Part shown: positions 831-59,383 of the stretch, piece by piece
Layout: every line of letters begins with the position of its first letter
Numbering within the stretch: the stretch's first letter is position 1
Assembly: GCF_003918875.1 (NCBI RefSeq)
Contig: NW_025764992.1
Coordinates: 434,001-498,000 of the forward strand
Source of the DNA: Haliotis rubra
Taxonomy: Eukaryota
Length of the DNA stretch: 64,000 nucleotides
Direction of reading: 5' to 3'
Position numbers and translations under genes: made by a program
The notes under the pieces: model-generated
What the model was told of the DNA's origin: nothing
Database searches by the model: none
The model's input: the letters and a program-made list of their open reading frames with translations, nothing else

Positions 831-1019
831 CTGTATATAGAAAGGTGTTGTCGTGGCCCCCTACGATCACGTCAACTCCCTGCACGAACTCTGCGATCCG
901 CTTGTCGACATCGAACCCAGAGTGACCGACCGCAATGATCTTGTTGATGCCCTGCTGCGCCAACATCGACACCTCTTTCTGTATGGTAGCTACTTCGTCC
1001 TCGAACACGAGGTCTTCAC
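831..1019 (-). CDS. NT5E: Gene 1 exon 3 (189 nt)
   Basis: TAG acceptor; FEDEV...KIIAVGHSGFDVD...GGHDNTFLYT; GTGAG donor. Confidence 0.92.
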
Positions 1020-4000
1020 CTATAATCCATTACGTGAGCATGTACAGTAAACTACGGTTATGACGAACTCGAAGGGACCAGTAATTTTAGTTCGTTATAA
1101 CCGAAGTTCGTAGGTACACAGGGTTATGCAGTGAGAATAATCGCGTTTACTTTATTCGTATTTAAAACACGCCTATTTTTTAATTTGCATTCATTTACAT
1201 GCGATATCTTTGAGTAGACATGTGCGGTGAAGATAGAAAAGGCTGCCATGAGGTGCATCTAAATTTGTGTATTCGGGTAGGGATGAAGGTATAGAGGGTA
1301 TTTAGGGCATAGGGATACATGATGAAGGTATAGAGGGTATTTAGGGCATACGGGTACGTGGTGAAGGTATAGAGAGTATTTAGGGCATACGGGTACGTGG
1401 TGAAGGTATAGAGAGTATTTAGGGCATACGGGTACGTGGTGAAGGTATAGAGAGTATTTAGGGCATACGGGTACGTGGTGAAGGTATAGAGGGTATTTAG
1501 GGCATACGGGTACGTGGTGAAGGTATAGAGTATTTAGGGCATACGATACATGATGAAAGTATAGGGTACGTGGTGAAGGTATATAGAGTATTTAGGGCAT
1601 ACGGGTGCGTGGTGAAGGTATAGAGAAGTATTTGTAAAAAGAGAATTATTTAGGGCATGCAGGGTACGTGGTGAAGGTATAGAGAATTATTTAGGGCATA
1701 CGGGTACGTGGTGAAGGTATAGAGGGTATTTAGGGCATACGGGTACGTGGTGAAGGTATAGAGTATTTAGGGCATACGGGTACATGATGAAAGTATAGAG
1801 AGTATTTAGGGCATAGGGGTACGTGGTGAAGGTATAGAGAGTATTTAGGGCATACGGGTACGTGGTGAAGGTATAGAGGGTATTTAGGGCATACGGGTAT
1901 ATGATGAGGGTAAAAAGGGTATTTAGGACATACGGGTACGTGGTGAAGGTATAGAGAGTATTTAGGGCATACGGGTACGTGGTGAAGGTATAGAGGGTAT
2001 TTAGGGCATATGGTACGTGGTGAAGGTATAGAGGGTATTTAGGGCATACGGGTACGTGGTGAACGTATATAGGGTATTTAGGGCATACGGGTACATGATG
2101 AAGGTAAAAAGGGTATTTAGGACATACGGGTACGTGGTGAAGGTATAGAGGGTATTTAGGGCATACGGGTACGTGGTGAAGGTATAGAGGGTATTTAGGG
2201 CATATGGGTACGTGGTGAAGGTATAGAGGGTATTTAGGGCATAGGGGTACATGATGAAGGTATAGAGAGTATTTAGGGCATACGGGTACGTGGTGAAGGT
2301 ATAGAGGGTATTTAGGGCATAGGGGTACGTGGTGAAGGTATAGAGAGTATTTAGGGCATACGGGTACGTGGTGAAGGTATAGAGGGTATTTAGGGCATAG
2401 GGGTACGTGGTGAAGGTATAGAGTATTTAGGGCATACGGGTACGTGGTGAAGGTATAGAGGGTATTTAGGGCATAGGGGTACGTGGTGAAGGTATAGAGA
2501 GTATTTAGGGCATACGGGTACGTGGTGAAGGTATAGAGGGTATTTAGGGCATACGGGTACATGACGAGGGTATTTAGGGCATACGGGTACCTGGTGAAGA
2601 TTCAGAATGTAGTTTCCCAGAAATTATTGAGAAAATCTTTGTTTCCTAAGACAGATAATTTAATTTTGAAATAGGTGTGATGTTATGTAGTAAGGTACTC
2701 AATATGGGAGGCAACTCTTGTAGGCTTAAGACTGAACCTTACTGCATCAAGAGTTATCTCCCCTGGTGTAGCAGACGGCTTCCTTTGTTGACATGGCAGA
2801 TTTGACCGCAGAAGAAAAACGAAAGCTGGTTCTAGATGATTTTGAAAGGGGTGTGACTAATGCAAAAGAGTTAGCTGGTAGACATGACATTCATCTGTCT
2901 ACAGTATACAGGACTTTGAAGAATATTCAATCAGGAGTTGGGATTGAGCAGGGAGGCCAAGGAAGTTCAGTACTTGGTCAGATTGTGAGTAGACGGACAT
3001 TGAAAAGTGTTGAGAATATCAGGAATGAGACGACTAAAAGAGGAAGTCTTCAGGTATGTAATGAAACCCTTTTGACAAGAACTACTAAGAGTTAACTGGG
3101 TGAAAAGGCGCGAATTTCCTTCACCATTGATACCATTAAAGATGCTCAAAAAGATAGACGTAACAAGTGGTGAAGGGCTCACGAAAATCAAGATTGGGAT
3201 AATGTTTCTTTTCTGGTGAAAGTTCTTTCTGGCTTTTACCGAACTGTGTGAAAATTTGGACAAAAGATATCGTGAAACCTATCTACCTCCGCCCAAAACA
3301 TAGCCCGAAATTTCACATGTAGGGCGGGATATCATCACGTGGAGTGACGCCGTTGTGTATTTTGCTGGAAATTTGACGAAGGAACGATATGTTGACATCT
3401 GAAATGATGCCCTCCTTCCAACGGCCCGAACACTGTATGAATATAACTGGATTTTTAAGCATGATAACGACCCAAAACACACTGGGAGCTACACAAAACA
3501 GTGGTTGTCGGACGAAAATGTTCAAGTTTTAGACTGGCCCAGCTACAGCCCAGGTCTTAACCCTATTGAGAATGTGTGGGGTCTAATGAAGGACAGAATA
3601 AACCAAAAAGGACCTAGAAATATTGAGGATATGAAGCAAAAAGTGGTCGACTATTGGGATACGCTGTCAAACGATTTCCCACAAACTTTGATCGGTAGTG
3701 TAGGCCTATCTATAGGCGCATCCAGTCGTGTATTGCAGGGCAAGGGGGGCTTACAAAATACTGAAAATACACTTGGACTGTAAGAGAATCATATCTCAAC
3801 ATATTCATTTTAGTAAAACTTCCATTGTTTATATACATGTATTAGATATTTGTCGAAACACCTTTGTGCCTTGTGAAGGTACAAAAGGTACGTGGGTTAC
3901 ACGGATACCTGGTGTAGATATTGAGGGTGTCTCCTGTGTAGTGTATCCAATGACCCCTATCCTCTCTCCTCCCACTGTAAAGATGTGGCTGTTTTTGAAC

Positions 4001-7000
4001 TTTGTTCGAAGTGGAGAGTCTTGGTTGAGAAGTCGAATGTTTGTACTCAACACGGGGAAGTTAGCAGCGTCGAGAAAAGGGATGAGACCAGACTGCCCCT
4101 TGTCAAACTCGTGGTTCCCCAAGGCCTGTTGAAGACAGGAAAGTGATCTACAACAGGCAACAGCGATAACACAGGCACTGGCACAGGCACTAGCCATTAC
4201 TAGGGGGTTTTACACTAAATATCTTAACTACAATTGATTGCACTGCTCATTTGATACGGTTTTGGTTTTGCTGTTTGTTTCTGTTTAATGCCGCGCTCTT
4301 CAACATGAATGATACAGCATGGCAGTCTGGAAATGATCGAGTCTGGACCAGACAATCTAGTGATCAATTTCACGAGTATCGATTTTCGCAATTGGAATAC
4401 TATGACATGCATCAAGTCAGCGAGCCTGACCACCCGATCCCGCTAGTATCCCCAACGACAAGCTTGGGTTGCTGAAGACAGTTCTAAACCGGATCGTCAT
4501 GAGTACATTTAATATACAGGTGGTATTAGGTAGGGAGTATGTGAAATATTGATGACCTCCACGTTTATGCAAGCCTTCTCATGCCACCCCGTAACTGACC
4601 ATCGCAGTCAGCAGCAACCCAGCTGCTAGACGGCGGCTTATAATAATCAAGTGTGCATCAGAAACACACCAGTGATGGATATTATGAGTATAGACCTATG
4701 ACGTCGAGGTATGACGGCACGCCATCAACCCACTCACCGATCATCCAATCAATTCGCATGTTACGGCCAGATTCCAAGGTACCACTGACTGAGTTTGGGT
4801 TTACGCCGCTTTTAGCAATATTCCAATCCAGCAACATCACGGCGGGGGACACCAGAAATGGGCTTCACACATTGTACCCATGTGGGGATTCGAACCCGGG
4901 TCTTTGGCGTGACGAGCCAACGCTTTAACCATTAGGCTACCCCACCGTCCCCAAGGTACCAATTCGAACCCGGAATCCCCACGATGTTGAATGTGAAACC
5001 ATGCAGTGGGATGGTTAATACACCAGAACCCTTTTACCCAATTATCGTTAGGTTCAAATATATGTATTTCATTTTTAACGCTGACAGGTACCTCTGTCGT
5101 TACCTGTAAATAGTAACAGAGGTATTGTACGAACATGCATTCCTTGTCCAGTCCCAAGTACAAAGTGGAAAGGTATAAAGGTATTTTATGACCACGTACC
5201 TTTGATTGTGTGGTGTTTACGGGGCAAAATATACGTCATGACAAAGGGGCCAGGTAGAAGGGGTGTTAAATGTCAAAGGGTATGTGAGAAGCGCTAACTA
5301 AGGTATAACCTACGTGTGGTGACCAAGAGTTCAAGGAAGAGGTTTAGTTTAATGAACCAAGCAGAAGGAGCACTGGAGGAAATCGGTGTCGGTTATAGAA
5401 GAAAGTTGTATAGCTTTGTTTAGGGCCAAGACAAATCTGTTGTGTTTGAGACGCCAAGGTTCTGGAGAGTTTAGTCGAAGGCATTCATGTTAGGTGTTTA
5501 CAGTGCGATGTAGAAGTGGTGTTTAAGAAACTGGTAGAATAGGTGCTTAAAGGGACCTATATCACGTGTACTAGGAAGCAAGAGTGTTAGAGGGGCATAG
5601 TGGGTGGCACGAATGTTGAAATGGTGGGTACTACATTTTTGTATGGTAGGAAACAGTAATCATAGAGTTGTGTGGTGGGGGATTGGTACGAGGGGAACGC
5701 AGGTGGAGTTGGGGTTGATGGTAGCACCAGTGTTGAAGTGGTGGGTATTTGTATGCCTGGAAGTTGTAGTCTTAGAGTTGTGGGTGGGTGGGTACATGGG
5801 GGGTTTACAATAGGTACGTGAAGGGTGGGGGTTGAGTTTGGGTTGATGGTAGCACCAGTGTTGAAGTGGTGGGTATTTGTATGCCTGGAAGTTGTAGTCT
5901 TAGAGTTGTGGGTGGGTACATGGGGGTTTACAATAGGTACGTGAAGGGTGGGGGTTGAGCTTGGGTTGATGGTAGCACCAGTGTTGAAGTGGTGGGTATT
6001 TGTATGCCTGGAAGTTGTAGTCTTAGAGTTGTGGGTGGGTGGGTACATGGGGGGTTTACAATAGGTACGTGAAGGGTGGGGGTTGAGCTTGGGTTGATGG
6101 TAGCACCAGTGTTGAAGTGGTGGGTATTTGTATGCCTGGAAGTTGTAGTCTTAGAGTTGTGGGTGGGTGGGTACATGGGGGGTTTACAATAGGTACGTGA
6201 AGGGTGGGGGTTGAGTTTGGGTTGATGGTAGCACCAGTGTTGAAGTGGTGGGTATTTGTATGCCTGGAAGTTGTAGTCTTAGAGTTGTGGGTGGGTACAT
6301 GGGGGTTTACAATAGGTACGTGAAGGGTGGGGGTTGATTTGGGTTGATGGTATGCCAGTGTTGAAGTGGTGGGTATTTGTATGCCTGGAAGCTGTAGTCT
6401 TAGAGTTGTGGGTGGGTACATGGAGGTTTACAATAGGTACGTGAAGGGTGGGGGTTGAGCTTGGGTTGATGGTAGCACCAGTGTTGAAGTGGTGGGTATT
6501 TGTATGCCTGGAAGTTGTAGTCTTAGAGTTGTGGGTGGGTACATGGAGGTTTACAATAGGTACGTGAAGGGTGGGGGTTGAGCTTGGGTTGATGGTAGCA
6601 CCAGTGTTGAAGTGGTGGGTATTTGTATGCCTGGAAGTTGTAGTCTTAGAGTTGTGGATGGGTACATGGGGGTTTACAATAGGTACGTGAAGGGTGGGGG
6701 TTGAGCTTGGGTTGATGGTAGCGATGGTAGCACAATCACCTAAAGCATGAGGCATATAGGGCAGGGACTGTAGATTTAACCTTTGTCCGAACATATTGTT
6801 CCATATACTATTTTCAATGGTCCATTCACATACTTTTCGCGGCTATTTTGTTTTCACGCCCAGGGGAATCTTATGCCTCGACGGATAATCGAGACATTAA
6901 CGACATTAAAGCTCTCCCCAACTGTGCTGCAAACGAACACATTTCTTAATGTGTTTCTGTTTTCATAAACAACGGAATCTCTGTATTTATCTCACACATG

Positions 7001-10000
7001 AATGGCGTTTTCTGATTGGCTGAGCGCTCTTCTATTATTTTCAATGTACCCCGCTTACAAGCGAGTAACATTTTCTATGTTACCCGCTGGGAACATACAC
7101 AGGGAACATAAAGAAACATAGAGGGTACATCATCAACCCATGCTACCCTCGTCACCAGTTAACAAATTACATTGCACACAGTATGTACTCGGCAAGGCGG
7201 AATTCGAAATTAGTTTATCGGTTTTAATTTCAGCAACGTCAGTACATACCCTAACGTGCAACATCGGTACATACGCTGTTTTTCTGGTCAATCACCTGAT
7301 TGCCAAGTTTGTACAGATACAGATACAGATACAGATAAGCTGCGTATCTGCGTAAATTACGCAAATATTTATGTGAAAACTCAATTCTTATTAAGTCTAT
7401 TGCGTACAAGTACGCATGAATTGTTGTAAATACTCAATATATTTGATCTTACATGCGAACACACAAAAGTGTCAAATCTTAGCTTGCGTACCTGTGAATT
7501 AGTTCCTGTCACTAAACCTACTAGAATTTGGTATAAGCAGACCCATGTGCTACAGATGGAGGTTACTGAGGATAGATAAAATAGCTGAGGTATATTGAGA
7601 GGTTCTTTTTCAGCACATGAACGTGGCAACTTGCAGTCTTTCTTATCGTGTCTCATATTACAGATCAAATATAAATAATCAAAAGTTAAACTTCATTATA
7701 TTTTTACAATTAATCGAAAATGGCAAAATACCAAACATAGTTTGAGTGAGGTGGGTACAATGTATTTGGTTACTGACAGGAAACTTAGGATACCCAATTG
7801 AGATGAACACAAGCGAGTACATAACTCAATGACCGAAAAAGTTATCTGTAGCTCTGCATGTTTATGCAAATCGTGTGTTTGGCAGGTGCTAACGGTAGGT
7901 TAAGACATGGTTACCATTTTCGTGAACATCTGGTTTCATCACGGATTTTCAATGATCCATTCATATGATTTTCACTATTATTTTGTTTAGGAGGATTATA
8001 GAGAGCGATTGTCTTCTAACGTTTAGGCTTTATAGTTATAGAGAATAGTAACAGCAGTGTAGTCTGTCTCACAGTCCCTGAACTACATTATTTTCCCTAC
8101 TGACTAGCTTTCCCCTGGAATGCTAAAGAACTAAATGAAGCAAGTCTAGATTTCCCCAGGTTCAGGAATCTCCAACTCACTGGGGCTCCTTTTCAATTTA
8201 AATGGGTTTATTTGTCACTATCAATGTTATATATATTCAGGGACCAAGCTTTAGTCTAAAAGCAATGGCGGAAGTGATGGGTACCTCAGGGTTTGTTTGC
8301 TTTTTGTTTAACGCCGTACTCAGTAATATTCCCGGCTTGTGACAGCGGTCTGTCAGTAATCGAGTCTGGACCAGACAAGCAAGTGATTGGCATCATGAGC
8401 ATCGATCAACGCAATGGGGACGTCAGTCAAGCCTGGGTCCCGATCCACAAAGCGATCGTAAAGTTACGACCTGTCGTAAATCTATAGTATATCACAGGCT
8501 TACCGATGTTGGAGCGCCACAAACGCTTAGGGGATCGGGACCCTGGCAACGCCCTTTACGACAAGCTTGGGTTGCTGAAGGCCTTTTACGACAAGCTTGG
8601 GTTGCTAGAGGCTAACCGAGCTCCACGGGTTCAAGGAAGCAGTCGTCTTAGAGGGGGCCTGGTATAATATATATGGGGTTTTAACGAGACAGAAAGCAGC
8701 AGTGTTATGTTATGGGCAAGAAAGCAGTAGGGGTCGGGCATATTGGTCTTTAGCGAGGTGAGTACCACCAGTGTCGAAAAGGTGTCTAAGCTAATTTACT
8801 GTTTGATTAGTCAGGTATTGAATTCATTTTGAAAACTTTGTAAACCACGCGACGTGTCAACGATAGAAATCGCGAGACGTGCTGCTTGAACCTCTGACAC
8901 AAAGTTAGTGAAAGTGTCTGTAACTGAACTATAGTCCACGTCACGCCATTTTCTGCTTTCTGAAGTTAATAGTACACAAACCGACCCGGGGCTTTGTAGG
9001 TAGTGTGTACATAGGGCGTGGTGGTCGCGTCCTCTGTATACACTCTGTATACTCTCTGTATACACTATGTATACACAGACAGTTCCTACCAAGTGCATGT
9101 ATTGTCGTACTCATTGCCCAGTCACGCTTATTGGCACGTACCTGTTGGGTCATTCACCTGGGTTTCGTAAGGTGCCTGTTCTTACCCATCGTCGAAACAC
9201 TATTTCTATTAACTATTTAGGAGATAAACATACTGTATTGGAAAATCAGAGGTATATAACGAAATTATAATAGCTCTAAATCTGATTTAAAACTAGCTCT
9301 AAATCTGATTTAAAACGTGCGTGAGATTTTAAATAAAACATCCAACTGTGTTGGAAAATCAGAGGTATATAACATGAATAAGACATCTGAATGACTTTAA
9401 TTAACCAATCACAAACCAGTATTTACTGAAATCATGGTAGAATATATTTTACCATTTGAACATTTTTAAGTAGTATTGTAATGCAAAACTGTTACGTGTC
9501 AAAAACATCGTATACTATTTGCAACTGGGATGTATTACACTGTTAACCTCGTTAATCTGGACCACACAATTCACAGTGGATTTAACATAGGCCCGTGTTT
9601 AACGATCAGATGCGAGTAAAAGCTCTTCCCAACAAACAACCACATAAAACAGCAATAGTAGCAGCAGCAGCACCACCACCACCAACTGCTACTACAACAA
9701 TTATAGTAGACACGAATGATCTAATGGTTTCCTTAATGTTTGTCAAAACTGTCAAGCTGTCATCATAACGGGTCTTGTTCTGTGACCGTATTTGATGTCA
9801 GCGGGGCATTGTATAGAACTGGTTTACCTTAAGCTTCTCTCTTTATATAGCCCTTCGAATTATTTTTATCTTTAGGTGTAGGTGAGCGAGGTTTAGTTCA
9901 CCTTCAAGATTACTGCACATATGCGCATGTGTGTTTATGTATCTGGTGTGTGTGTGGTGTGTAGGGTGTATGTAAGTGTGTTATGCTAGTCCGGACCAAT

Positions 10001-10732
10001 GCCGGTTTTAGCAGGTGCGAGCGGTCAGATACCATGTATATAATAACTACTCATTCACAGTGGACTAGCCCCGGTCAGTCTTTGTGTTCTTCCCGTAATG
10101 CAGAGAACAAAGCAGGGTAACAATCAGGACATGTGTTACCATAAATTATGTATCAGGTTCGACCCTTCGCTCTCCGGGCAGACGCGCTGTCCTCTACACC
10201 ACTGATTCGGTGTCTATCTAAAGACGGGACGGTGGGTTGGCCTAGTGGTCAAAGCATTCGCTCATCACGCCAAAGACCCGGGTTCAATTCCCCACATAGT
10301 TATAATGTGTGAAACCCATTTCTGGTGTCCCCCGCCCTGATATTGCTGAAATAATTCTAAAAGAGGCGTACTACCTAAATCAAACCATTCCTGGTAATCA
10401 TGACTCACCATGGCATCATATCCTAGATGGTTCATGAAAGTAGCCGTTCCGGCTCCCTGGAACTTGTAGAACCACAGGGTGCCACTAAACTGGTCTCCAC
10501 CATCGAGCAGAAGAGTGTTGGTTCGGGCACTCCTTATCTCCTGGATCTTAGTCTTGAGACGAGCGAAGCCCCCGTAACATTTCCCTTCAGCTGCATTGAC
10601 GGGGGAACACTGACCGCTGTACTTGTTGGTCTGCTCGATACGAGCGTGGACGTCGTTGGTGTGGAGGATGGTGAGGTTGAAGCTGACGGCCACAGCAGGC
10701 AGGATGAAGGCGATCAGAGGAAGGATGAACAT
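831..10732 (-). CDS. NT5E: Gene 1: ecto-5'-nucleotidase/apyrase (CD73-like), exons 1-3 only; continues beyond window start
   Basis: Exons 10732-10409, 4125-3909 and 1019-831, all GT-AG and phase-compatible. Signal peptide MFILPLIAFILPAVAVS; motifs HTNDVH, DGGDQFSGT, LGNHEFD, VGHSG, GGHDNTFLYTG. Confidence 0.93.
1044..1110 (+). mobile_element. pogo/Tigger-like MITE terminus (fragment)
   Basis: TA-CAGTAAACTACGGTTATGACGAACTC with internal inverted copy GTTCGTTATAACCG. Confidence 0.4.
1276..2600. repeat. 39-bp minisatellite in gene 1 intron 2
   Basis: Unit GGGTACGTGGTGAAGGTATAGAGGGTATTTAGGGCATAC, about 34 copies. Confidence 0.95.
2610..3800 (+). mobile_element. Degraded Tc1/mariner (DD34E-type) transposon
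   Basis: Left TIR CCAGAAATTATTGAGAA; HTH (LSTVYRTLK), HDNDPKH and WPSYSPGLNPIENVW; frameshifts and stops; right TIR not seen. Confidence 0.85.
3909..4125 (-). CDS. NT5E: Gene 1 exon 2 (217 nt)
   Basis: CAG acceptor; ALGNHEFDKG...IGVIGYTTQETPSISTP; GT donor. Confidence 0.92.
4258..4503 (-). mobile_element. SINE-like family B, degenerate copy
   Basis: Shares GAGTCTGGACCAGACAATC and GAGCCTGACCACCCGATCCCG with other copies. Confidence 0.75.
4785..4950 (-). mobile_element. tRNA-derived SINE family A with 11-bp TSD
   Basis: A box TAGCCTARTGG and B box GGTTCGAATCC; TSD CCAAGGTACCA on both sides. Confidence 0.9.
5640..6725. repeat. ~117-122-bp G-rich tandem repeat in gene 1 intron 1
   Basis: About 9 units of GGGTTGATGGTAGCACCAGTGTTGAAGTGGTGGG...GGTACGTGAAGGGTGGGGG. 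Confidence 0.93.
8290..8630 (-). mobile_element. SINE-like family B copy interrupted by a hairpin MITE
   Basis: Family B sequence on both sides of the 8436-8542 insert. Confidence 0.75.
8436..8542. mobile_element. Short foldback MITE with CTG target duplication
   Basis: TIR GGTCCCGATCC/GGATCGGGACC flanked by CTG and CTG. Confidence 0.75.
10225..10378 (+). mobile_element. SINE family A next to the gene 1 exon 1 donor
   Basis: GGGACGGTGGGTTGGCCTAGTGG...GGTTCAATTCCCCACA...TTTCTGGTGTCCCCC. Confidence 0.85.
10409..10732 (-). CDS. NT5E: Gene 1 exon 1 (324 nt)
   Basis: ATG at 10732; FNLTILHTNDVHARIEQ...LGYDAM then GTGAG donor. Confidence 0.92.
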
Positions 10733-12747: not shown

Positions 12748-13153
12748 NNNNNNNNNNNNNNNNNNNNNNNNNNNNNNNNNNNNNNNNNNNNNNNNNNNNN
12801 NNNNNNNNNNNNNNNNNNNNNNNNNNNNNNNNNNNNNNNNNNNNNNNNNNNNNNNNNNNNNNNNNNNNNNNNNNNNNNNNNNNNNNNNNNNNNNNNNNNN
12901 NNNNNNNNNNNNNNNNNNNNNNNNNNNNNNNNNNNNNNNNNNNNNNNNNNNNNNNNNNNNNNNNNNNNNNNNNNNNNNNNNNNNNNNNNNNNNNNNNNNN
13001 NNNNNNNNNNNNNNNNNNNNNNNNNNNNNNNNNNNNNNNNNNNNNNNNNNNNNNNNNNNNNNNNNNNNNNNNNNNNNNNNNNNNNNNNNNNNNNNNNNNN
13101 NNNNNNNNNNNNNNNNNNNNNNNNNNNNNNNNNNNNNNNNNNNNNNNNNNNNN
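12748..13153. other. Assembly gap (N run)
   Basis: Run of N. Confidence 1.
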
Positions 13154-13341: not shown

Positions 13342-13343
13342 CC

Positions 13344-37869: not shown

Positions 37870-38072
37870 TCACTCATGACTGTGGGAATATAACACCACA
37901 AGTAGGACTGCTATCGTCGATGTAAGGAGTTGTGGTGTGGCACGTGTGACGTCACTACTGACGTCACCGAGGGTGGCTGGAGTCTCCTGGAATCTGATGC
38001 GACCCTCTATCCCGATGGTCAAAGGTGATACACGACTTGCGTATTCAATGAAGACATCGGCGTCCAGATCTC
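37870..38072 (-). CDS. NT5E: Gene 3 exon 9 (terminal)
   Basis: DLDADVFIEYASRVSPLTIGIEGRIRF...TIAVLLVVLYSHSHE*. Confidence 0.88.
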
Positions 38073-44000: not shown

Positions 44001-44013
44001 ATGAGCGGGCCAT
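37870..44013 (-). CDS. NT5E: Gene 3: ecto-5'-nucleotidase (CD73-like), 9 exons; -1 frameshift in exon 5 as assembled
   Basis: Exons 44013-43678, 43438-43225, 42085-41897, 41180-40983, 40767-40637, 39843-39724, 39536-39378, 38406-38203, 38072-37870. Signal peptide and hydrophobic GPI-like C-terminus. Confidence 0.9.
38203..38406 (-). CDS. NT5E: Gene 3 exon 8 (204 nt)
   Basis: VYDMQKPVGQRV...PSFLSNGGSGY. Confidence 0.92.
38550..38790 (-). mobile_element. SINE-like family B, full length with 13-bp TSD
   Basis: TSD TCTGACATCAGAG. Confidence 0.92.
39378..39536 (-). CDS. NT5E: Gene 3 exon 7 (159 nt)
   Basis: DVTMGDMQTVLPYRNT...WGFLQVS. Confidence 0.92.
39724..39843 (-). CDS. NT5E: Gene 3 exon 6 (120 nt)
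   Basis: NLIADGMV...AFMHGGGIRASIPP. Confidence 0.92.
39997..40385. mobile_element. hAT-type MITE
   Basis: TAGGG...CCCTA termini; 8-bp TSD GTATGTGC. Confidence 0.85.
40637..40767 (-). CDS. NT5E: Gene 3 exon 5 (131 nt; paralogs 132)
   Basis: EMTLQLMQPYK...LDGE, frame change, KSSCRVKECNL. Confidence 0.88.
40983..41180 (-). CDS. NT5E: Gene 3 exon 4 (198 nt)
   Basis: VVQDYRYGKYLG...GNPILLDNNTAQ. Confidence 0.92.
41562..41718 (+). mobile_element. SINE family A
   Basis: A/B boxes and tail. Confidence 0.8.
41897..42085 (-). CDS. NT5E: Gene 3 exon 3 (189 nt)
   Basis: RNLRFQDEV...ALGHSGF...GGHTNTFLYT. Confidence 0.92.
42243..42709. mobile_element. Tc1/pogo-type MITE
   Basis: TIR CCGTATTTCCTCTAATAA / TTATTAGAGGAAATACGG; TA TSD. 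Confidence 0.88.
43225..43438 (-). CDS. NT5E: Gene 3 exon 2 (214 nt)
   Basis: TLGNHEFDLGIEGL...GVIGYTSRETQLISST. Confidence 0.9.
43678..44013 (-). CDS. NT5E: Gene 3 exon 1 (336 nt)
   Basis: MARSLRLLSLYVIFLPELVVGFNLTILHTNDIH...YDVM; GTGAG donor. Confidence 0.92.
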
Positions 44014-45248: not shown

Positions 45249-45404
45249 GTCCGTGTTGGTGTTGGTGTCACCACCTTGTGTACTGGTGACGTCATGATGG
45301 GAGCGTGTTTGTTTGTTTGTTTATACAGTTACTGTTTGTCTGTGACGTAACAATGTCATAAATAGAATAATAGAGGGAGTGATGCAATAGGTGTACCTGT
45401 TTTA

Positions 45405-50399: not shown

Positions 50400-50405
50400 T
50401 TTATT
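50400..50405 (-). terminator. Candidate polyadenylation signal for gene 4
   Basis: AATAAA on the - strand ~110 nt after the stop codon. Confidence 0.4.
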
Positions 50406-50512
50406 AAAATATTGTTGCGTGGAGTATAGTGAAGACTAGCTCACACCAGTAATGATCCTTTACGTGTCTTATAAGTCACTAAAATGAATCAACAGAATCA
50501 TTCAAGGAACAG

Positions 50513-50724
50513 TCAGTCCCAACCAGTGTTTCCCATACAGGAAGATACGACCAGGAGCAGGATCGTCGCCGTCGTAGTCGCTGAACGTGGTGCGGGGCGG
50601 GCAACGTCACTGACGGGGCAGTCACACTCAGGCTTCTCCCGGAAGCTGATCCGCCCTTCCAGCCCGTGGGTAAGAGGGGATACACGTTGTATGTATTCGA
50701 GGAGAACGTATGTGTCCACATCGC
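50513..50724 (-). CDS. NT5E: Gene 4 exon 9 (terminal)
   Basis: DVDTYVLLEY...LEGRISF...TATILLLVVSSCMGNTGWD*. Confidence 0.9.
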
Positions 50725-53700
50725 CTGCAATAACAACAACGTCAGCTGATGAATCTGTAGATGAGGCAACAGAAGCTGCTCACACACAAACAATACATAC
50801 AAACAAGATATATATATACCCATGTGTCACTAAGCTGCTCATCATGTCAATTATCTGCCATGGGTCAGACCGCAAGGGTTATTCCTGTTTAGATGCTCTT
50901 CACTAGCTACACGGCAACTATTGTGAATCCATGCAGCTAAGATCTCTTTGTGTAAGCTGTCCCTCTGTTCCCGTTCTACAAAGATATCACAGAGCTACGA
51001 CTATCGTAAGCCAATGCTAACGTATGGGTGTTACAATCAACTTAGAGCTAATTCGCTCTGTGGAGCTGGGTCCTCGACGCTTTGATCAGTATCACAAAGC
51101 AACATAGAAACTTCATTATTGTGAAACTATGATCAGTAGAACAAACTAGAAAACTAGTAGAAAAAATGCAAACGTTTTTATCATTTTAAATAAAACATCA
51201 AAATATATCATATAGACAACCCATGAAGATCCGTGTTAGTACTTGTATTCAGTAACCCATGCTTGTCGTAAGAGGCGACTAACGGGATCGTGTGGTCAGT
51301 TTCGCTCACGTAGTAGACACATGCTATTGTATCCCAATTGCGTAGATCGACGCTCATAATGGTAATCACTGGATTTTCTGGTCCAGACTCGATTACTTAC
51401 AGACTGCCGCCATATAGCTGGAATATTGCTGAGTGCAGCGTTAAACAACAAACAAACAAATATCATATATGCATATACTAAGTACAGTAAACGACTGTAC
51501 CTCCGCTGTTCCCTGTTGGTGCTGTATTAAGCCTACTCAAAGACCACAATTATAATATGTCCGTGTCACATCACACACTTACCAAGCAGATGATGTTTGA
51601 TCTTGTTTTTGTTGATGACGTCATATCCGTCGCCGCCATTGGCAGTGAAAGAGGACATCACGATCTTGTATACTTCGGTATCGTCGAGATCCACGTAATG
51701 GGGCACGGTGCAGTTGGTGCATGTGACCTTGACCTCTACTACCCTTTGACCTTCTGGCATCGTCATGTCGTACACGACTTTCATACCTGGTTAGAAGGAA
51801 AACCTCTTACAGTGCCTTTATAGTGTCCAACTTACGATTAGAAAAAGCAAGTATACCAGTCGGGACATGTGAGGAGTTCAGATCTAATCGCGAGAACGTT
51901 TGCAAAAACAAAGTAATTGCGTGAGTTTACTTTTACGCCGCTTTTAGCAATATTACAGCAATATTACGGCGGGGGGAGACCAGAAATGGGTTTCACATAT
52001 TGTACCCATGTAGGGGAATCGAACCCGGGGCTTCGGGGTGACGCCCCCTACCAAAACAAAGACGCACGGTGGTATTGATATTCGAGTTTTGCCGCTATAC
52101 ATTTGCTTGGGTATTTCTGGGAGCATGGGCACTGTGGTACTACGTGATACGGTGTTCTGAGATGTGTCTCTTGGGCGTACCAGAAACCTATCATCGTGGG
52201 TTGGAATATCAGATTTATGTTTTAAGGTTAGCCAGCGCCATGCCTGTGTAGAGGTGGGTGTTTCGTGTTAGCTGTACCTCTTCGGGCTGTCCTCCCTCAT
52301 AAGACTAACCCGCTCAATCAGTACCAGGTCAGTCCCCTAAGCTTGGTACGTTTGCTATAGGTTGACGTACCCGACATCTGTAGGAAGCCCCCGAACAATT
52401 TCCCTGTCTCCGCCCACTTGGACGCCCCAAACTCCAGTGTCTCCCGGACATGTCTCCCAAGCAGCTCCACGATGTCGACGGTGTTCCGGAACGGTAGGAC
52501 GGTGGTGACATCGCCGAAAGTGACTTCACCTAAATACACGTGAACAGTCACATTACCCTAATGGTCCTGTGCATCGAGCATGTGCAATAATCTTAAACCC
52601 GAGGGAAAGCCCTCCCCTCAAAGAACCTTGTTCTGGATGCCAGACAAATAGCTATACGTGACCTGGGGCCTCTTTCACGAAGCAACATTTACTAAGGTTA
52701 ACCTTAACTCCAATTCTTTAACATTGCACTAAGGTTACCTTAGTGACTTACGATCACCTTAATGCTTTCTGAAAGGAGGCCCAGGCTAAAACTGCGGCCT
52801 AAATAAACGTTTCCAGAAGAACAACAGCTTTGTGGTTATAAGTGGTTATAATACAGGCTGTATGTAAAACCCTTTGATACACTTTGATGACTGTGACTGT
52901 CTGGTTTTATAGAAGCATTATCCAACCATTGTTCTGTGCTGCATTATATATCATTGGTAGACCAATACGTCGTTTCACACATACCTATGTGGTATAATGT
53001 AAGGAATTGTATGTAATAGTGCTGAATGAATTACCTCTCTGTAAAGATGCACGGATTCCACCCCCGTTCATAAAGGCGATGGCCACGTGGTTCCATTCCA
53101 GGGAGTCGCTGTGCTTCAGGTTCTGGTGCACCATTGCATCGGCATACAGGTTACCTGAGAAAAGGCCGACGTTTATACCAGCCTATGTTTCTCATCTCCC
53201 GCCCACCCAAAGTTTCATTATGACATAATATAATATTAACAAGAAAATGTTTTCTTGTCGCCCACCTCCCGCTGTTGAAATCTATTTAAAATACCCTTAC
53301 CCTTGCATACTTGTGAAAACCAAGTCAACTAGATCTTTCTTAATCCATGCGTAGTAACAATAGTGGGCAATGGCATACAGCACCGGAGACTGAAAGCATT
53401 ATAGAAAAGGCGAAACAAGGGGAGGGGGTGGGGTATGGGGAGCATAAGAAGATGAGACATTTGTTTCTTCTCTTCTGATGTCAATTACATGCACGCCCCT
53501 TTTACTGTGATGAGGCACCACATCCCAGTCTCATAGTGTCATCTCACACGTCTTACCTAAGTTACATTCTCTGACTCTGCAGGATGACCGTTCTCCGTCC
53601 AGCAACACTTGGCTTCTCGCGACCACCTGACCCATCTCGTCGGCCACGCCTTCTCTGTAGGGACGCATCACCTCCAAGGTCGCTTCATCTAGATACAGGA

Positions 53701-56700
53701 ACGGAGGCATCAGTTTCATGTTCATGTTACATGACCTCCCTAGACAGTGATATTGGTCTTAATGTGTTCTGTTGTTCTCTAAACAGTGATTAGTGAGTAT
53801 GGTTTTACGCCGCTTTTAGGAATATTCCGGCAACCTATGATACCAAGCTGTGTGGGTGCTGTTGTATTTCATTTAATACATTTTGTATGCAACAATAATC
53901 CTTTATATGATATATTTTGTAAAACTTTTTCTCTGTAAACTACAGATATGGGAACTTTTTGGGTACTAGTGAGGCACCTCATCGCCAGGACACGACGTCA
54001 GCTACTGTGGCTTCCACAAAACATGTAGTCTGGATCACGTATTTTTTGCACTACTCCGACATGGACACTGGCACGGCTCACATGGCGGTAAGCTATGAAT
54101 GAGTGAGTTGGGTTTTACGCCGCCTGTAGCAATATCCCAGCCACATCACGGCAGGGGACACCAGAAATGGGCTTCACACATTGTACCCGTGTGGGGAATC
54201 AAACCCGGGCCTTTGGTGTGACGAGCGAACGCTTTAACCACTCGCCCATTTATAAATAATGTGTCTATATTATAGCATAACAGTCACTGGCCACTTGATG
54301 TACAGTGTAGGGGGTGGTGTGTGTTTGATAAAATAGAATCAGGAACGGAAACCGACATGATTAAATTACCGCACTTTGTACCCATGTTGGGATTCGAACT
54401 CGGGTCTTCGGCGTGACGAGCCAACGCTTTACCCACCAGGCTACCTCCCCCCTCCCTCCCTCCACCCCCACCCCCAGCTATGAAAACACACAACACCTTT
54501 AAAAACTTCTAAAAAGATATTCATACCATTTTCAAACATAATTTCCGTTTTACATCGAAAGGAATTCGAGGATAGTCATGACGCGGCATTCTTTTACACT
54601 GGCGATGTATTATGTCAGATAGTTCATAGATACTTCTTGAACTGAAACCATAAAACAAATGTTGTAGTACATCTGTAGTACATCTTTTTGACCCCTTTCA
54701 GTGGTGTGACACCACAAACTTTCTTTTCAAAGCTCTCGGAAATCCGTTCTTTGACACTGTGTGTGTGCTTTATTATTAATAGTGAGTGAGTGAGTTTAGT
54801 GTTACGCTGCTTTTAGCAATATATTATTGGTTTATTTTTAAAAGAATGTATAGATCTATCATGTGAATAATGTATATGTAAATGGATGTGCATGTATTTA
54901 TGTATAACTTGTTAGAAAGGCATTTAGAACTTTGAGCTCTAAGGATGGATAACAATACATGGATGGACAACTTTTTTTATTCAGTGAGAGCGACGTAGGT
55001 TCTACTACCATTATCAACCAACACCGAAACGTCGCTCTCAGTGAATAACAGAAGTTGTTCATCCATACATTGTTATCCAGCCTTATGTATGTATGTCTTA
55101 TATGTATTAGTTGTATATACTTTCTCAGCACTGTAAATATATTTTGTACTTTAAGATACAGTTAACTTCTTTTGGCTGTGTGAAGGTTTCTTTAGATTTG
55201 AAACGTTCTATCCATGACCATAAACATATCGGTAACGCACAGAATATATTTATAACCGACAAGTTCTGAGGCATAGGCTGTCATAACTGTCAAGTACGTG
55301 TCATAACTGATCTACCGTGTATATAGAAGATCCGTTTATGTATTTTCAGAACTGATTGGCGGACCACCTACACTGTCGGTTTGTTGAGCCTCAAGCATAT
55401 CTCGTATAAAGTTTATTACCTTATGTCGCACGCTTTATCTTAGTCATTAGAGAGCCATAACTAGCAATATAAGGTTTATTACTTTTTGTCTAAAGCTTTA
55501 TGGCAGTCATGCATTGTTTTTACATAGTCATGACTTGCAGATTTAATATTCTAGTAGCCCATACACTAGAGACGGTTTACGACATAAGTGTCACAGTTTC
55601 ACACTGACATCTACAAACAGGACCTCGGCGAGGGAGGAGGTTGAAGGTCTAGAACCGGGAAAGCTTAGTCGGAGGATTAAGTGGTCAAGTGTACCTACCG
55701 TTTCATGATATAATTGTACCATTTACACTGACATCTATATATAGGAAGTCAGCTGGGGAGGAGGTTGAATTGCTAGTACAGGGTGTCGGAAGATTATCTA
55801 AGTGAGGTCAACCGTTTTCTGATATACTAAAAAAATGTACAATGACATAAATATGAGCTCGCTCACTTTTGGTATTTTTCGCTTATGGAGATACACATTA
55901 TCAACAGCTTTACCTTCGAAACGATTAGGAATATTTCAATCTTACACCTAAATGAATTACAAAGATCACTGAATAGGCAACCGGCATTTGTCGCCAGAGG
56001 TCACTCGCGGGATCTGGTGGTATCCCAATCGATGACAATCAAAGGATTGTCTGGTGCAGACTACTGTACGCCCTCATATAGCTTGAATGATGCTGAGGGC
56101 GGCGTAAAACAACAAAACAATTCAGTGATTATTCACCATGGCCTTAAATACACTGGAAATATGTCTACCAATAAGCCGTTTACACTGAAAATGGCATTAC
56201 AAGTGATGCGCCCTTTACATCAAAAGCGAAACCCTTCATACATTGAATTGTAAATAATATACTGAACTATAATAATATACGAGACTGACTAACGCCAGCT
56301 GATATGCTACATAGGAGATCTAGTTCTCGCCGTGCTGTTTAGAATTTCGGATATGCTAGTTTGCTCAGAACCTGTTGTCAGATAAATATATGAAGACCAG
56401 AACCCTACAATTGTTATTGTCCATTTGCAACCCCTCCCCCCTCTCCTATCACGAGGAGCAGATCACACAGCGTCACATCAACCGGTTCTACTCTCCAATA
56501 TAGCTTCTCCAATGTATGTCACCCACCTTGTGCTGTGTTGTTGTCTAGTAGGATTGGGTTACCTCCCCATGAAGTGATGACTCCTTCCGGGTCAAAAGTC
56601 ACTTCCAGAGCTCCTAAATACTTCCCGTAGGCATAGTCCTGCACCACCAGCACCTTGGCCCCTCCCGACTGGGTCACCACGTGGGGATACTCTCCTACCG

Positions 56701-59383
56701 GTTCCTCGTTGGACGGATGGTCGCCTGCAAAAAGGACAATCCATGACTGGTGTGGCTTTTTGCATGTTGGCAAAATGCAGTTGAACCTGATCAAAACATT
56801 CAATAGCATACTCAGTTGCAGTTTATATGGGTGAGTTTGCTCAGAAAGCAGCTTCCGTCGGGCTCAGTGTACGAGCATGACATACACAGCTGACCATATG
56901 TTTTGTTGGGTAAGTATCCGAGCTGAACGGTGATTGCGTTTACGCATCTTGTGGGTTGGTATGTGCTTGTCTCACCTGTGTAAAGGAATGTATTGGTGTG
57001 ACCTCCGACAACTACATCCAGGTTGTTGACCTCTGCTGCAATTTTCTTGTCAACATCAAATCCCGAGTGACCAACAGCAATGATCTTGTCGATGCCCTGT
57101 GACGTCAGGATGTCAGCCTCTCTCTGGACTGCTGCAATCTCATCTTCAAATTTGAGGTTTTGACCTGGAATGAATAGGATACCATCAGAAGATTATCATT
57201 ATAATAAGTATCTTCAAGTGTTGAGTGTTTGAAAGGGTCCCTTTACCTCTCGTTACTGTTGCCTGGTCAAACATAGGTCAAACTTACCTGGAACAGAAAT
57301 TACCGGTGTCTCTTTGGAAGTGTATCCGATGACCCCGATACGTTCACCATTGACAGTCAACACCGTGTGTTTCACTATCTTGCTATTAACCCTTGGCTCG
57401 GTAGTAGCGTCGATGTTGGCGCTGACCACGGGGAAATTAACGTCGTTGAGTAAGGGCATCAATCCGTCGATACCAAGGTCAAACTCGTGATTACCCAGCG
57501 TCTGGAAGGGCAGAGAGAGAATAGAAGCAAAATACATCGTAAATAGACCTTTTCGTGAACTTTGCAACTGCTTAAGAGATTGCGATTTTATTGTAATTAC
57601 CGAGAAGCACGGGCATGTCGTGTGCGTACAATCACGTGCGTGCGTGCGCGTGCGTGTGTGTTGTTGGCGGACTAGGTACTGAGGAAAGCAGTGAGTGCTG
57701 AGAACAAACAGTAGACAACAAGATATATATATATATAGGGGACAATAGGACGAGGGGACTATTCTGCCAGCAAGGAATCGGAGGCAAGCAATGAAGTCAA
57801 CAGGGCGATCCGGGTTACAATTGGTCTTCAGTAAACCATGCAGGTCGTAAGAGGCGACTAACGGGATCGGGGACTTGGTTGACACATGTCATCGTATCCC
57901 AATTGTGTAGATCGATGCTCATACTGTTGATACAGACCGCCACCATCTAGCTGGAATATTGCTGAGTACGGCGTTAAACCACAACCCATCCTTAAAGAGT
58001 AATAGGGACTAAGCAAGCAGGAGTAACACAGAAGGGAACAGGTCAAAATGGCCACACGTCAAAACGGCCACACAAAAACGTCAAAATGGCCACAACCCGC
58101 AGTCAAAATGGCCATAGCAAAAAGTCAAAATGGCCATAGCAAAAAGTCAAAATGGCCATAGCAAAAAGTCAAAATGGCCATAGCAAAAAAGTCAAAATGG
58201 CCATAGAAAAAGTTAAAATGGCCAGAGAAAAGGTCTAACTGGCCATAGAAAAATCAAACTGGCCATAGAAAATGTCAAACTGGCCATAGAAAAAGTCAAA
58301 CTGGCCACACATTATTTTTTATATTTTTTAATATGCCTAACATTTGTATTATCGGGATATTTTGTGGTCATTTTGTCGTGTGGCCATTTTGACTAGGACC
58401 CATACGGAAAAGCAATAGTTACATAGCACTGGCAATAGAAGGAAGGACAAGCAACGGGAGATGCACATACTGACATGTAATAAGTACACGCAATATACAC
58501 TTATCTCTAGCAGGTGCACTAAATATAGAACGTCAACGTAGATTTCTTATGGGTGTGCAAAGGTTTCTGTCGGTATTATATATCATCATTACATAATCTT
58601 CTAAAGGATGCCTCAGTTTGCTCTGGTGAGAGTTGTGTTTTAAAAGTCGACAGGTCCACTCCACCGTCTCCAAGAGCTACGTTTATGTCGTTTGGTTGTG
58701 AACTATAGCGGAGACACTGTCGAGTCCTCCTCCCCTCTGACTTTTGTCATTTATACCTACCAACTAGATAGTGCTTTCTGTGGGAATAGGTCACGTCTAT
58801 AAACCACATCTACAAACTCCAAGTGCAGTGTTGCGCATAGTCAAGAGTGGGGACCATTGTTTAGTATATACGCCTGCCTGTTAGGACATGCTCGTTGAAA
58901 TAACAACATTCTTGAAGACATTGGCGTTGGAATGTGACTCCAGCGTAAAACTGCATGGTGAATGCAAACAAAGCACGCACATTTCAACAACGTGTTATCA
59001 AAAAGGTTTAGAAATGTTCTAACAAATAGATGTTACATTGCAACAGGTTACTATACTCACCATGACGTCATACTGCAACAGGTTCATGAATCTGGCCACA
59101 ACGGCACCGCGGTACTTGTAGAACCACAACGTCCCCGAATACTCGTCCCCTGCAGACAGGAGGATGGTGTTGGGGTGGAGGGCACGCTGTTCTCGGACTT
59201 TGGTCACCTGTCGCGCTGTCCCACCAAAACATTTCCCCTCTGCCACATCGTCGACCCGACACTGACCGCTGTACTTGTTGGTCTGCTCGAATCTTGCGTG
59301 GATGTCGTTGGTGTGGAGGATGGTGAGGTTGAAGCTGACGACCACAGCAGGAAGGAGATCATAAGCAGAGGCCCCAGGAGCAT
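50513..59383 (-). CDS. NT5E: Gene 4: ecto-5'-nucleotidase (CD73-like), 9 exons; -1 frameshift in signal-peptide codons as assembled
   Basis: Exons 59383-59061, 57501-57288, 57164-56976, 56724-56527, 53688-53557, 53154-53035, 52529-52371, 51786-51583, 50724-50513. Canonical NGGGIR, LPF and NGGDGY motifs. Confidence 0.9.
51215..51460 (+). mobile_element. SINE-like family B, full length
   Basis: ACCCATGAAGATCCG...; (AAAC)n tail; TATCATATA flanks. Confidence 0.85.
51583..51786 (-). CDS. NT5E: Gene 4 exon 8 (204 nt)
   Basis: VYDMTMPEGQRV...SSFTANGGDGY. Confidence 0.92.
51921..52048 (-). mobile_element. SINE family A, truncated
   Basis: Body and tail match. Confidence 0.8.
52371..52529 (-). CDS. 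NT5E: Gene 4 exon 7 (159 nt)
   Basis: EVTFGDVTTVLPFRNT...GGFLQMS. Confidence 0.92.
52666..52781. mobile_element. Short foldback MITE (CTG/CAG flanks)
   Basis: GGGCCTCTTTC...GAAAGGAGGCCC. Confidence 0.6.
53035..53154 (-). CDS. NT5E: Gene 4 exon 6 (120 nt)
   Basis: NLYADAMV...AFMNGGGIRASLQR. Confidence 0.9.
53557..53688 (-). CDS. NT5E: Gene 4 exon 5 (132 nt)
   Basis: EATLEVMRPY...LDGERSSCRVRECNL. Confidence 0.92.
54097..54452 (-). mobile_element. Two SINE family A fragments
   Basis: 54097-54247 and 54372-54452. Confidence 0.8.
56527..56724 (-). CDS. NT5E: Gene 4 exon 4 (198 nt)
   Basis: DHPSNEEPVGEYP...VVQDYAYGKYLG. Confidence 0.92.
56976..57164 (-). CDS. NT5E: Gene 4 exon 3 (189 nt)
   Basis: QNLKFEDEI...AVGHSGFDVD...GGHTNTFLYT (hand-translated). 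Confidence 0.9.
57288..57501 (-). CDS. NT5E: Gene 4 exon 2 (214 nt)
   Basis: TLGNHEFDLGIDGL...GYTSKETPVISVP. Confidence 0.92.
57805..57990 (+). mobile_element. SINE-like family B with deletions
   Basis: GATCCGGGTTACAATTGGTCTTCAG...GTCGTAAGAGGCGACTAACGGG. Confidence 0.8.
58034..58400. mobile_element. MITE with subterminal ~20-bp tandem repeats
   Basis: GGGAACAGGTCAAAATGGCCACAC / GTGGCCATTTTGACTAGGACCC ends; about 13 copies of GTCAAAATGGCCA. Confidence 0.7.
59061..59383 (-). CDS. NT5E: Gene 4 exon 1 (323 nt, 1-bp deletion at ~59350)
   Basis: MLLGPLLMISF, frame change, AVVVSFNLTILHTNDIH...YDVM; GTGAG donor. Confidence 0.88.

Follow-up and report, generated by a model that had tools for sequence, protein, structure and literature searches.

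The window analysed, a 64,000-nucleotide stretch of the Haliotis rubra genome (QXJH01000109.1:434001-498000), contains four genes of the NT5E/CD73 type, here designated g1 to g4, at the positions assigned to them in an initial sequence-only reading of the DNA. That reading described a four-gene cluster; four genes do lie in the window, but the tandem array is larger and in H. rubra has at least six members, since two further canonical paralogs are located approximately 22-45 kb rightward on the same contig. The gene order g4, g3, g2, g1 and the orientations of the genes match the H. asinina chromosome assembly. Gene models of nine exons each, in which every intron is bounded by GT-AG, were built for g2, g3 and g4. 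The minus-strand gene g4 (50513..59383) comprises exons at 59383-59061, 57501-57288, 57164-56976, 56724-56527, 53688-53557, 53154-53035, 52529-52371, 51786-51583 and 50724-50513. Also on the minus strand is g3 (37870..44013), the paralog with a remodelled nucleoside pocket, with exons at 44013-43678, 43438-43225, 42085-41897, 41180-40983, 40767-40637, 39843-39724, 39536-39378, 38406-38203 and 38072-37870. The exons of g2 (25090..35341) lie on the plus strand at 25090-25406, 27501-27714, 28019-28207, 28568-28765, 29723-29854, 32466-32585, 33527-33685, 34084-34287 and 35085-35341. The remaining gene, g1 (831..10732, minus strand), is a more distant paralog of its own type (g1 type), whose orthologs P0198, P0202 and P0302 are canonical; its first three exons (10732-10409, 4125-3909 and 1019-831) fall in the window and the remainder extends past the left window edge. 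Its introns are GT-AG, it has no frame break, and its exons share 78-95% identity with the g1-type protein of H. rufescens. An assembly gap (12748..13153), flanked on the right by a (TGC/TAC)n microsatellite, is intergenic, lying between the 5' ends of g1 (10732) and g2 (25090), an interval in which no 5'-nucleotidase-coding similarity was detected. This position, the absence of coding similarity around the gap and the synteny with H. asinina indicate that no reading frame depends on it.

The three nine-exon paralogs had been taken as complete, but none of them is an open frame in the assembly, each being one base short. The break in g4 (59352..59353, minus strand, read as X) lies inside the putative signal peptide, and the mature protein is not in frame with the ATG at 59383; the model shares 98.5% identity with RefSeq XP_046575012, which is annotated as 'partial'. 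Exon 1 of g2 is one base short in comparison to the paralogs and the H. asinina ortholog, at a run of five G (25243..25247, plus strand, read as X). The public annotation of g2 begins past this break (547 aa), and the model is 99.6% identical to RefSeq XP_046574515 over residues 51-596. The break in g3 falls in a G run of exon 5 that is one base short (40668..40675, minus strand), where the public annotation splits the gene into calls of 358 aa and 221 aa. A short-read contig (X1) carries, at full depth (123.4 of 123.4), one additional letter behind 40671. A 1354-nt spliced transcript contig (X9, record 24), the RNA nature of its source run being a guess, exceeds the window sequence by one letter over exon 5 and joins E8-E7-E6-E5-E4-E3 at the modelled exon ends. 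The extra letter in both contigs and the joining of the modelled exons indicate that the g3 break is an assembly error and that the gene is expressed; the frame-corrected reading agrees with the orthologs. The breaks in g2 and g4 are presumably assembly errors as well. Consequently, three genes are mis-modelled in the public H. rubra annotation (g2 truncated, g3 split and g4 'partial') owing to single-base errors, demonstrated for g3 and likely for g2 and g4, and users of this annotation would miss the whole g3 protein.

Membership of the family was evident from the domain content. Both PF00149 (Metallophos) and PF02872 (5_nucleotid_C) were detected above the Pfam cut-offs in P0299 (the g3 ortholog), P0301 (the g2 ortholog) and P0298 (H. 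rubra g4), and single g3 exons from the window matched both domains. P0299 aligned with human CD73 from end to end (E=3e-155), and residue numbering was verified by alignment to human CD73 chains. The motifs HTNDIH, AGD, GNHEFD, GHSG, GGH(T)N, CR and GIR, which had been read from the sequence, are all present in g2, g3 and g4. The residues D36, H38, D85, N117, H118, D121, H220 and H243 are kept in these three genes and in every Haliotis paralog, and g1 has the metal and catalytic residues in the three exons that lie inside the window. N245, R354 and R395, which bind the phosphate, are likewise kept in g2, g3 and g4. Retention of the metal ligands, the His-Asp pair and these three phosphate-binding residues suggests that the array copies are most likely active 5'-phosphomonoesterases. 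The models show hydrophobic stretches at both the N- and the C-terminus, the putative signal peptide of g4 being interrupted by its frame break.

In CD73, crystal structures show that N390 and D506 hold the ribose hydroxyl groups and that the base is clamped by F417 and F500, and dNMPs are poorer substrates (PMC8677862, PMC7508162, PMC12586806). G392, G393 and G447 line a pocket according to docking rather than a measured contact (PMC8657903). The canonical contacts N390, F417, F500 and D506 are complete in g4 and the other paralogs, and g4, previously read as canonical, also retains G447 and A502. At positions 390/417/500/506, g3 has H, Y, F and S, and g2 has N, F, F and H.

The motifs HGGGIR, LPY and NGGSGY, by which g3 had been set apart, are literally there, but its private pocket changes number five rather than three, G447W and A502S having been overlooked beside N390H, F417Y and D506S. 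On the minus strand, alignment to CD73 places the His codon of position 390 at 39752..39754 and the Tyr codon of position 417, on one side of the base clamp, at 39496..39498; the Trp codon of position 447 was located at 39397..39399 by manual counting along the frame of exon 7. The codons for SNGGS (38249..38263) contain Ser at A502 (38263-38261) and Ser at D506 (38251-38249) and are identical in the X1 short-read contig. The combination H390/Y417/W447/S502/S506 is the same in H. rubra, H. asinina, H. rufescens and H. cracherodii, whereas elsewhere the g3 protein drifts to approximately 84% identity. Among 201 conserved columns g3 had five private fixed changes, three of which affected the set of four nucleoside contact residues (p=3e-5, in a test made post hoc on a pattern already noticed in the sequence-only reading); g4 had none. 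Among 144 animal homologs, position 506 is Asp in 128 and position 390 is Asn in 135, and W at position 447 occurred in no other sampled homolog. With five changes statistically concentrated in the nucleoside site, the case for an altered g3 appears stronger than first proposed. A Pro to Ser change at the LPY proline of g3 (position 39501) in one short-read contig, likely from the same species, could be a segregating damaging allele.

The g2 pocket is canonical except for D506H, G391A and L415M. The motifs NAGGIR, MPF and NGGHGY quoted for it are literally present, but NAGGIR reflects G391A with N390 kept and MPF reflects L415M with F417 kept, leaving D506H (His codon at 34239..34241, plus strand, by alignment to human CD73) as the sole change at a ligand contact. 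Position 391 is A or S in 70 of the 144 animal homologs. Two of the three differences quoted thus lie outside the ligand contacts and are common variants, and the case for g2 seems weaker than it was made out to be. H506 is also found in the H. asinina ortholog P0301, so that the g2 substitution is conserved in two species as the g3 pocket is in four. In H. rufescens and H. cracherodii, a search of the 10 kb downstream of g3 yielded no g2 ortholog, which may be lost in these species or located elsewhere.

A tree of the Haliotis paralogs placed g2, g3 and g4 in separate clades, each with support of 100/100. D506 was lost independently in the g2 and g3 clades. Between orthologs, dN/dS was 0.17-0.19 for g3, 0.147 for g2 and 0.152 for g4. 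On the stem branches the fitted values were approximately 0.49 for g3, 0.41 for g2 and 0.21 for g4, and on most later branches roughly 0.1-0.2, two short American g3 tips reaching 0.37 and 0.57; these branch values are rough, their dN and dS lengths being fitted by least squares to pairwise distances. Relatives were searched with an alignment of a full-length representative and exon references as the query, and the resulting set is incomplete, as it lacks the H. asinina g3 protein although this is a called gene. In a large representative-protein search no close full-length relative was found, and the best match, P0036 from an acorn worm (50% identity), serves as a scaffold only.

These observations are consistent with the following scheme. 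The array genes encode dimetal phosphoesterases of the CD73/NT5E type, built of two domains and bearing a putative signal peptide as well as a hydrophobic C-terminal tail that resembles a GPI-anchor signal and may anchor them to the membrane. The duplication probably predates the split of the four sampled Haliotis species, after which g2 and g3 would have altered the nucleoside-holding part of the C-terminal domain. In g3, both ribose-hydroxyl binders have been replaced (N390H and D506S) and one side of the base clamp changed (F417Y), together with a residue adjoining the other side of the clamp (A502S) and a glycine that, by docking, forms part of the pocket next to the base (G447W); in g2, the ribose-binding Asp is replaced (D506H). 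Both sets of variants were then retained under purifying selection, which probably gave rise to several surface or secreted nucleotidases differing in sugar or base preference. Without the acidic binder of the ribose diol, and in g3 with an imidazole gained, the site would fit substrates with deoxy, substituted or anionic 2'/3' positions. We therefore favor, at a probability of about 0.6, an abalone-specific array of ecto-5'-nucleotidases in which the g2 and g3 pockets changed after duplication and were kept by selection, with a likely alteration of sugar or base preference. The lineage-specific ectonucleotidase set with an intact catalytic centre and a diversified pocket that had been proposed is thus partly supported. 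It withstood the two refuting conditions, named along with it, that sequence data could address: the substitutions recur in orthologs (the g3 pocket in four species, H506 of g2 in two), selection is purifying, and g3 is transcribed and correctly spliced. A changed substrate specificity of g2 and g3 is well motivated by the residues replaced. As five nucleoside-holding residues are replaced around an intact catalytic centre in a pattern shared by four species, g3 probably acts on a nucleotide other than AMP. Candidates are nucleotides whose ribose is deoxy, phosphorylated or otherwise substituted at 2'/3', because the diol binder has become Ser, an imidazole has been added and a Trp would fill the pocket; ADP/ATP, NAD and nucleotide sugars, which were named previously, are guesses. 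A bolder version, to which we give somewhat less than even odds, would regard g3 as a CD73 site re-engineered for a substrate class unserved by characterised animal 5'-nucleotidases, and D506H of g2 as an independent further step along the same path.

All paralogs might instead have stayed AMP-preferring, the array being maintained for reasons of dosage or of expression confined to certain tissues or stages, with the substitutions tolerated or fine-tuning Km and kcat. CD73 tolerates NMPs broadly, N390 is its only side-chain contact to adenine, and without the 2'-OH contacts its activity goes down by only about 25-30 points (PMC8677862), so that the substitutions might affect the kinetics and leave the choice of substrate as it was. 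Moreover, F417Y and A502S are conservative (Tyr is found at position 417 in 14 of the 144 homologs), and with at least four other canonical paralogs redundancy would be high. However, this account has to accommodate five private changes at near-invariant positions that are concentrated in the nucleoside site and unchanged in four species, the large G447W substitution absent from other sampled homologs, and two independent losses of D506, and we consider it a serious but rather unlikely alternative. Far less probable is that g3, and perhaps g2, has lost the hydrolysis of nucleotides and instead serves for binding, pairs with canonical copies in heterodimers or acts on a phosphoester other than a nucleotide. 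Replacement of both ribose-hydroxyl binders in g3, dimerisation of the family through the C-terminal domain (PMC8677862) and the concomitant lack of R354 in D506-less paralogs of amphioxus and other lineages would fit such a role, whereas a pure binder would not need the metal ligands, catalytic residues and both arginines that g2 and g3 keep under purifying selection.

The least probable explanation, which we consider very improbable, is that g2 and g3 are duplicates in decay with genuine frame breaks, as the assembly frameshift in each, their truncated and split public annotations and the Pro to Ser allele of the X1 contig might suggest. The g3 break is, however, missing from both the short-read and the spliced transcript contigs, and there is a single lesion per gene in approximately 1.75 kb of coding sequence with all splice sites and introns intact. 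A second full-depth indel difference, outside the coding sequence in the same 6-kb stretch, is what would be expected of an error-prone long-read assembly. The ortholog dN/dS of g2 and g3 (0.15-0.19) equals that of canonical g4, and orthologs in other species are intact. Pseudogene status is excluded for g3 and unlikely for g2.

The preferred array of diversified ecto-5'-nucleotidases can be set against better known members of the family. Human CD73/NT5E (4H2I, 7QGM) shares with the abalone proteins the two-domain architecture, length, metal ligands, H118/D121, N245, R354 and R395, its signal peptide and hydrophobic C-terminal tail have putative counterparts in the abalone models, and its nucleoside contacts are identical in g4. 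In contrast, vertebrates have one gene rather than a tandem array of at least six, and the sites of g3 (H390/Y417/W447/S502/S506) and g2 (H506 in place of Asp) depart from it. Snake venom 5'-nucleotidase (5H7W, 7D0V) belongs to the same family and scores similarly to CD73; the RefSeq name 'snake venom 5'-nucleotidase-like' is an automatic homology naming, and nothing indicates a venom role in abalone, which are grazers. Lineage-specific duplicates with the same fold and altered substrate-site residues also occur as insect salivary apyrases and as paralogs in amphioxus, some of them lacking D506. Nevertheless, the sampled copies additionally replace R354 and/or R395 or G392, whereas abalone keep both arginines, which would make a shift toward ATP/ADP less likely and speak for a substrate of the 5'-monophosphate type; an apyrase-like reading was accordingly held less likely. 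The bacterial relatives, E. coli UshA, H. influenzae NadN (3ZTV) and T. thermophilus 5'-nucleotidase (2Z1A), gave weaker but significant matches (E=6e-97 to 1e-51) and are much more distant, but they illustrate that the fold is retunable through its C-terminal domain. UshA is a UDP-sugar hydrolase and NadN an NAD nucleotidase, and these relatives are monomeric and periplasmic.

CD73 is a heavily studied drug target whose nucleoside site is known in atomic detail. In the literature searched, nothing relevant was found on abalone or mollusc 5'-nucleotidase paralogs or on CD73 point mutants at the residues changed in g2 and g3, and no description was found of natural variants combining an intact catalytic centre with a rebuilt nucleoside site. 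The five-residue g3 variant of four abalone species would offer a ready means of testing which residues determine the sugar and base preference of this fold, and its pocket points to an unexplored extracellular nucleotide chemistry in molluscs that may serve, for example, digestion, purinergic signalling or defence.

Six-frame motif scans, together with an all-against-all comparison of open stretches, identified four ecto-5'-nucleotidase (NT5E/CD73-like) genes in the window, here named g1 to g4 from left to right, which confirmed the four-gene cluster proposed by the sequence-only reading. The genes g2 (25090-35341, plus strand), g3 (44013-37870, minus strand) and g4 (59383-50513, minus strand) each comprise nine exons of nearly identical lengths. 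In their models every intron is bounded by GT-AG, with phase 0 at intron 1 and phase 1 at introns 2-8. Only exons 1-3 of g1 lie inside the window (10732-10409, 4125-3909 and 1019-831, minus strand). A tblastn search with four abalone proteins revealed no additional 5'-nucleotidase exons in the window. In g2 and g3 the last part of exon 1 and the adjoining donor (LQYDVM followed by gtgagt) recur immediately downstream (25389-25441 and 43695-43536, respectively), and the first donor was chosen because the second copy would introduce an in-frame stop in g2. Exon 4 of g2 (28568-28765) and g3 (41180-40983) shares 87% and 91% amino-acid identity with P0198, an H. rufescens protein of the distant g1 type, and that of g4 (56724-56527) about 73% over a longer alignment. 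Against the g1 type, identity is 30-60% in the C-terminal exons 5-9 and intermediate, 50-72%, in exons 1-3. Such likeness suggests that exon 4 is under strong constraint or has undergone gene conversion.

The nucleoside pocket was mapped onto human CD73, with which g4 exons 6 and 8 give gapless alignments. The full-length H. rufescens g3 ortholog P0299 matches chain 7qgm_A (E=3e-155), the index of which agrees with literature numbering (R395 in GGGIR, F417 in LPF, F500 and D506 in NFLANGGDGF). In CD73, N390 and D506 form hydrogen bonds with the ribose hydroxyls, N390 additionally reaching adenine N3 or pyrimidine O2, the base is clamped by F417 and F500, the phosphate is held by R354, R395 and N245, and deoxynucleotides are poorer substrates as the 2'-OH contacts are missing (PMC8677862, PMC7508162, PMC12586806). 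No copy has lost the metal ligands, H118/D121, N245, R354 or R395, in line with what the sequence-only reading had stated of the metal and catalytic motifs and both arginines of g2, g3 and g4, and g4 proved canonical, again as claimed. For g3, the reported N390H, F417Y and D506S substitutions were recovered, but the list was incomplete, since G447W and A502S are also present. These two adjoin the nucleoside contact set: A502 is two residues away from F500, and docking places G447, with G392 and G393, in the pocket lining beside the ligand (PMC8657903). Tryptophan at 447 occurs in no other protein among 144 animal homologs. For g2, D506H stood, whereas the supposed changes at N390 and F417 did not; both residues are kept, NAGGIR representing G391A and MPF representing L415M. 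D506H is thus the only change in g2 that touches a contact residue. In the same 144 homologs, position 506 is Asp in 128, position 391 is mostly Gly (71), Ser (52) or Ala (18), and position 415 is mostly Leu (93), Gln (22) or Met (7).

Orthologs were retrieved with a profile built from a full-length relative and the window exons, and a cluster look-up gave more. In the maximum-likelihood tree, which also placed additional canonical paralogs and the distant g1 type, the g2, g3 and g4 clades each received 100/100 support. The g3 clade contained H. rubra, H. rufescens P0299 and H. cracherodii P0189, the g2 clade H. rubra and H. asinina P0301, and the g4 clade four species; an intact 585-aa gene was modelled from the g3 position in H. 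asinina. The pocket changes are conserved, with H390/Y417/W447/S502/S506 in all four g3 orthologs and H506 in both g2 orthologs. Across the 201 columns in which the other 27 sequences are at least 85% conserved, g3 carried five private fixed changes; three of these hit the set of four nucleoside contact residues (hypergeometric p=3e-5). In g2 there were four such changes, one of them in that set, and in g4 none. Nei-Gojobori dN/dS between ortholog pairs was 0.17-0.19 for g3, 0.147 for g2 and 0.152 for g4. A rough least-squares fit to pairwise dN and dS gave stem values of 0.49 (g3), 0.41 (g2) and 0.21 (g4), and later branches mostly near 0.1-0.2, with 0.37 and 0.57 on the two short American g3 tips. 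Rough as the branch fit is, this pattern agrees with change soon after duplication, followed by constraint.

The description of g2, g3 and g4 as complete did not hold: in this assembly a single missing base interrupts the reading frame of each, and translation was done with X at the break. The breaks lie in a run of five G in exon 1 of g2 (25243-25247, plus strand), at ggggaaag in exon 5 of g3 (40668-40675, minus strand) and in the signal peptide of g4 (59352-59353, minus strand). Logan contigs from four sequencing runs were compared with the g3 region (38100-44050). A contig of run X1, the DNA run that represents the region best, has an extra letter behind 40671, exactly at the g3 break, at a depth of 123.4 of 123.4. 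A 1354-nt contig of run X9 (record 24), ~99% identical to the window, aligns to g3 exons 8, 7, 5, 4 and 3, with piece ends at the modelled exon ends give or take a few ambiguous letters; the 118 letters separating the pieces for exons 7 and 5 are consistent with exon 6, within which contig depth is present. Its exon 5 piece is also one letter longer than the window, and exon 5 with the extra letter reads like the H. asinina and H. rufescens orthologs. The g3 break is therefore an assembly error. The X9 contig further indicates transcription of g3, or of the ortholog of a very close relative, with the splicing that the model predicts. X9 is only guessed to be RNA, as the run is small and nearly missing from intron bins free of repeats, and derivation from a retrocopy instead of a transcript is formally possible. 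The breaks in g2 and g4 are inferred to be errors as well, since in either gene the break is the only lesion, the splice sites are undamaged and purifying selection is strong. Several more single-base indels separate short-read contigs from the assembly within 6 kb (44022, 40831-40977, 41474), the one at 44022 in the g3 5' UTR being at full depth; this agrees with haplotype differences or a high rate of indel errors in the assembly. At all three breaks the public gene models are distorted: the g2 annotation begins past the break (547 aa, without the signal peptide and first metal motif), g3 is broken into 358-aa and 221-aa calls, and g4 is labelled partial. The H. rubra RefSeq proteins XP_046574515 and XP_046575012 are 99.6% and 98.5% identical to the g2 and g4 models, respectively, and the window corresponds to QXJH01000109.1:434001-498000 of GCA_003918875.1. 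At 39501 (g3 exon 7, codon 39499-39501), the X1 contig, probably from the same species, has A for G at full contig depth, turning the conserved Pro of the LPY motif (position 416) into Ser; the three other runs agree with the window, and the A may be a segregating allele.

An assembly gap (12748-13153), flanked on the right by a trinucleotide microsatellite, separates the divergent 5' ends of g1 and g2. No 5'-nucleotidase coding similarity was detected by tblastn of abalone proteins between 10732 and 25090. The H. asinina chromosome assembly has identical gene order and orientation, g4(+), g3(+), g2(-), g1(+) and then a WD40 gene, with g1 and g2 head to head 21 kb apart; thus the gap has no bearing on any reading frame. 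None of the genes extends into the second N run (62848-62988). The g1-g2 spacer contains an ORF with Tc1/mariner-type transposase domains (HTH_Tnp_Tc3_2 and DDE_3; 19321-20118, minus strand). Most of the spacer between the g3 5' end and the g4 3' end is a 4.8-kb minisatellite (45395-50181; a 27-nt unit repeated about 177 times, with strong GC skew), and the long ORFs over it were rejected as artefacts of the repeat. Long tandem arrays also occupy g2 intron 5 (30391-32385; 30-nt unit x 66) and the g1 introns (1284-2560 and 5712-6722; 39-nt unit x 33 and 123-nt unit x 8). The array continues about 22-45 kb beyond the right edge of the window, where the contig carries two further canonical paralogs, one of them P0184. 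H. rufescens and H. cracherodii have g4 then g3 as in the window and carry other canonical copies in the tree; g2 lies downstream of g3 in H. rubra and H. asinina, but a search of the 10 kb downstream of g3 found no g2-type gene in H. rufescens and H. cracherodii, the two American species. The array content thus varies between Haliotis lineages, in what looks like birth-and-death evolution.

RefSeq proteins of other abalone species carry the automatic name 'snake venom 5'-nucleotidase-like', which reflects homology only. Our literature search found no paper on these abalone proteins or on natural CD73-family proteins that vary at these residues.

The genes of the window are real CD73 family members under selection, and on the evidence of the X9 contig g3 is also expressed. 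A pseudogene reading of g3 is excluded by the assembly error at its frame break and the spliced X9 contig, and is unlikely for g2. The main rival explanation takes the changes as fine-tuning of an AMP-type enzyme, with expression as the chief difference among the copies, and the known tolerance of CD73 for many NMPs is compatible with it. An apyrase-like move to ATP or ADP, suggested by the sequence-only reading, seems less likely given the retained R354 and R395. As judged from the residues, catalytic machinery and phosphate grip are untouched, with the nucleoside grip rebuilt in g3 and altered in g2. With the negative charge lost, and an imidazole gained in g3, nucleotides whose 2'/3' positions are deoxy, substituted or anionic would be favoured, and the Trp at 447 would leave less room next to the base. 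The pocket changes, which replace both ribose-hydroxyl binders in g3 and the acidic one in g2, most likely represent a shift in the accepted nucleotide, mainly at the sugar.
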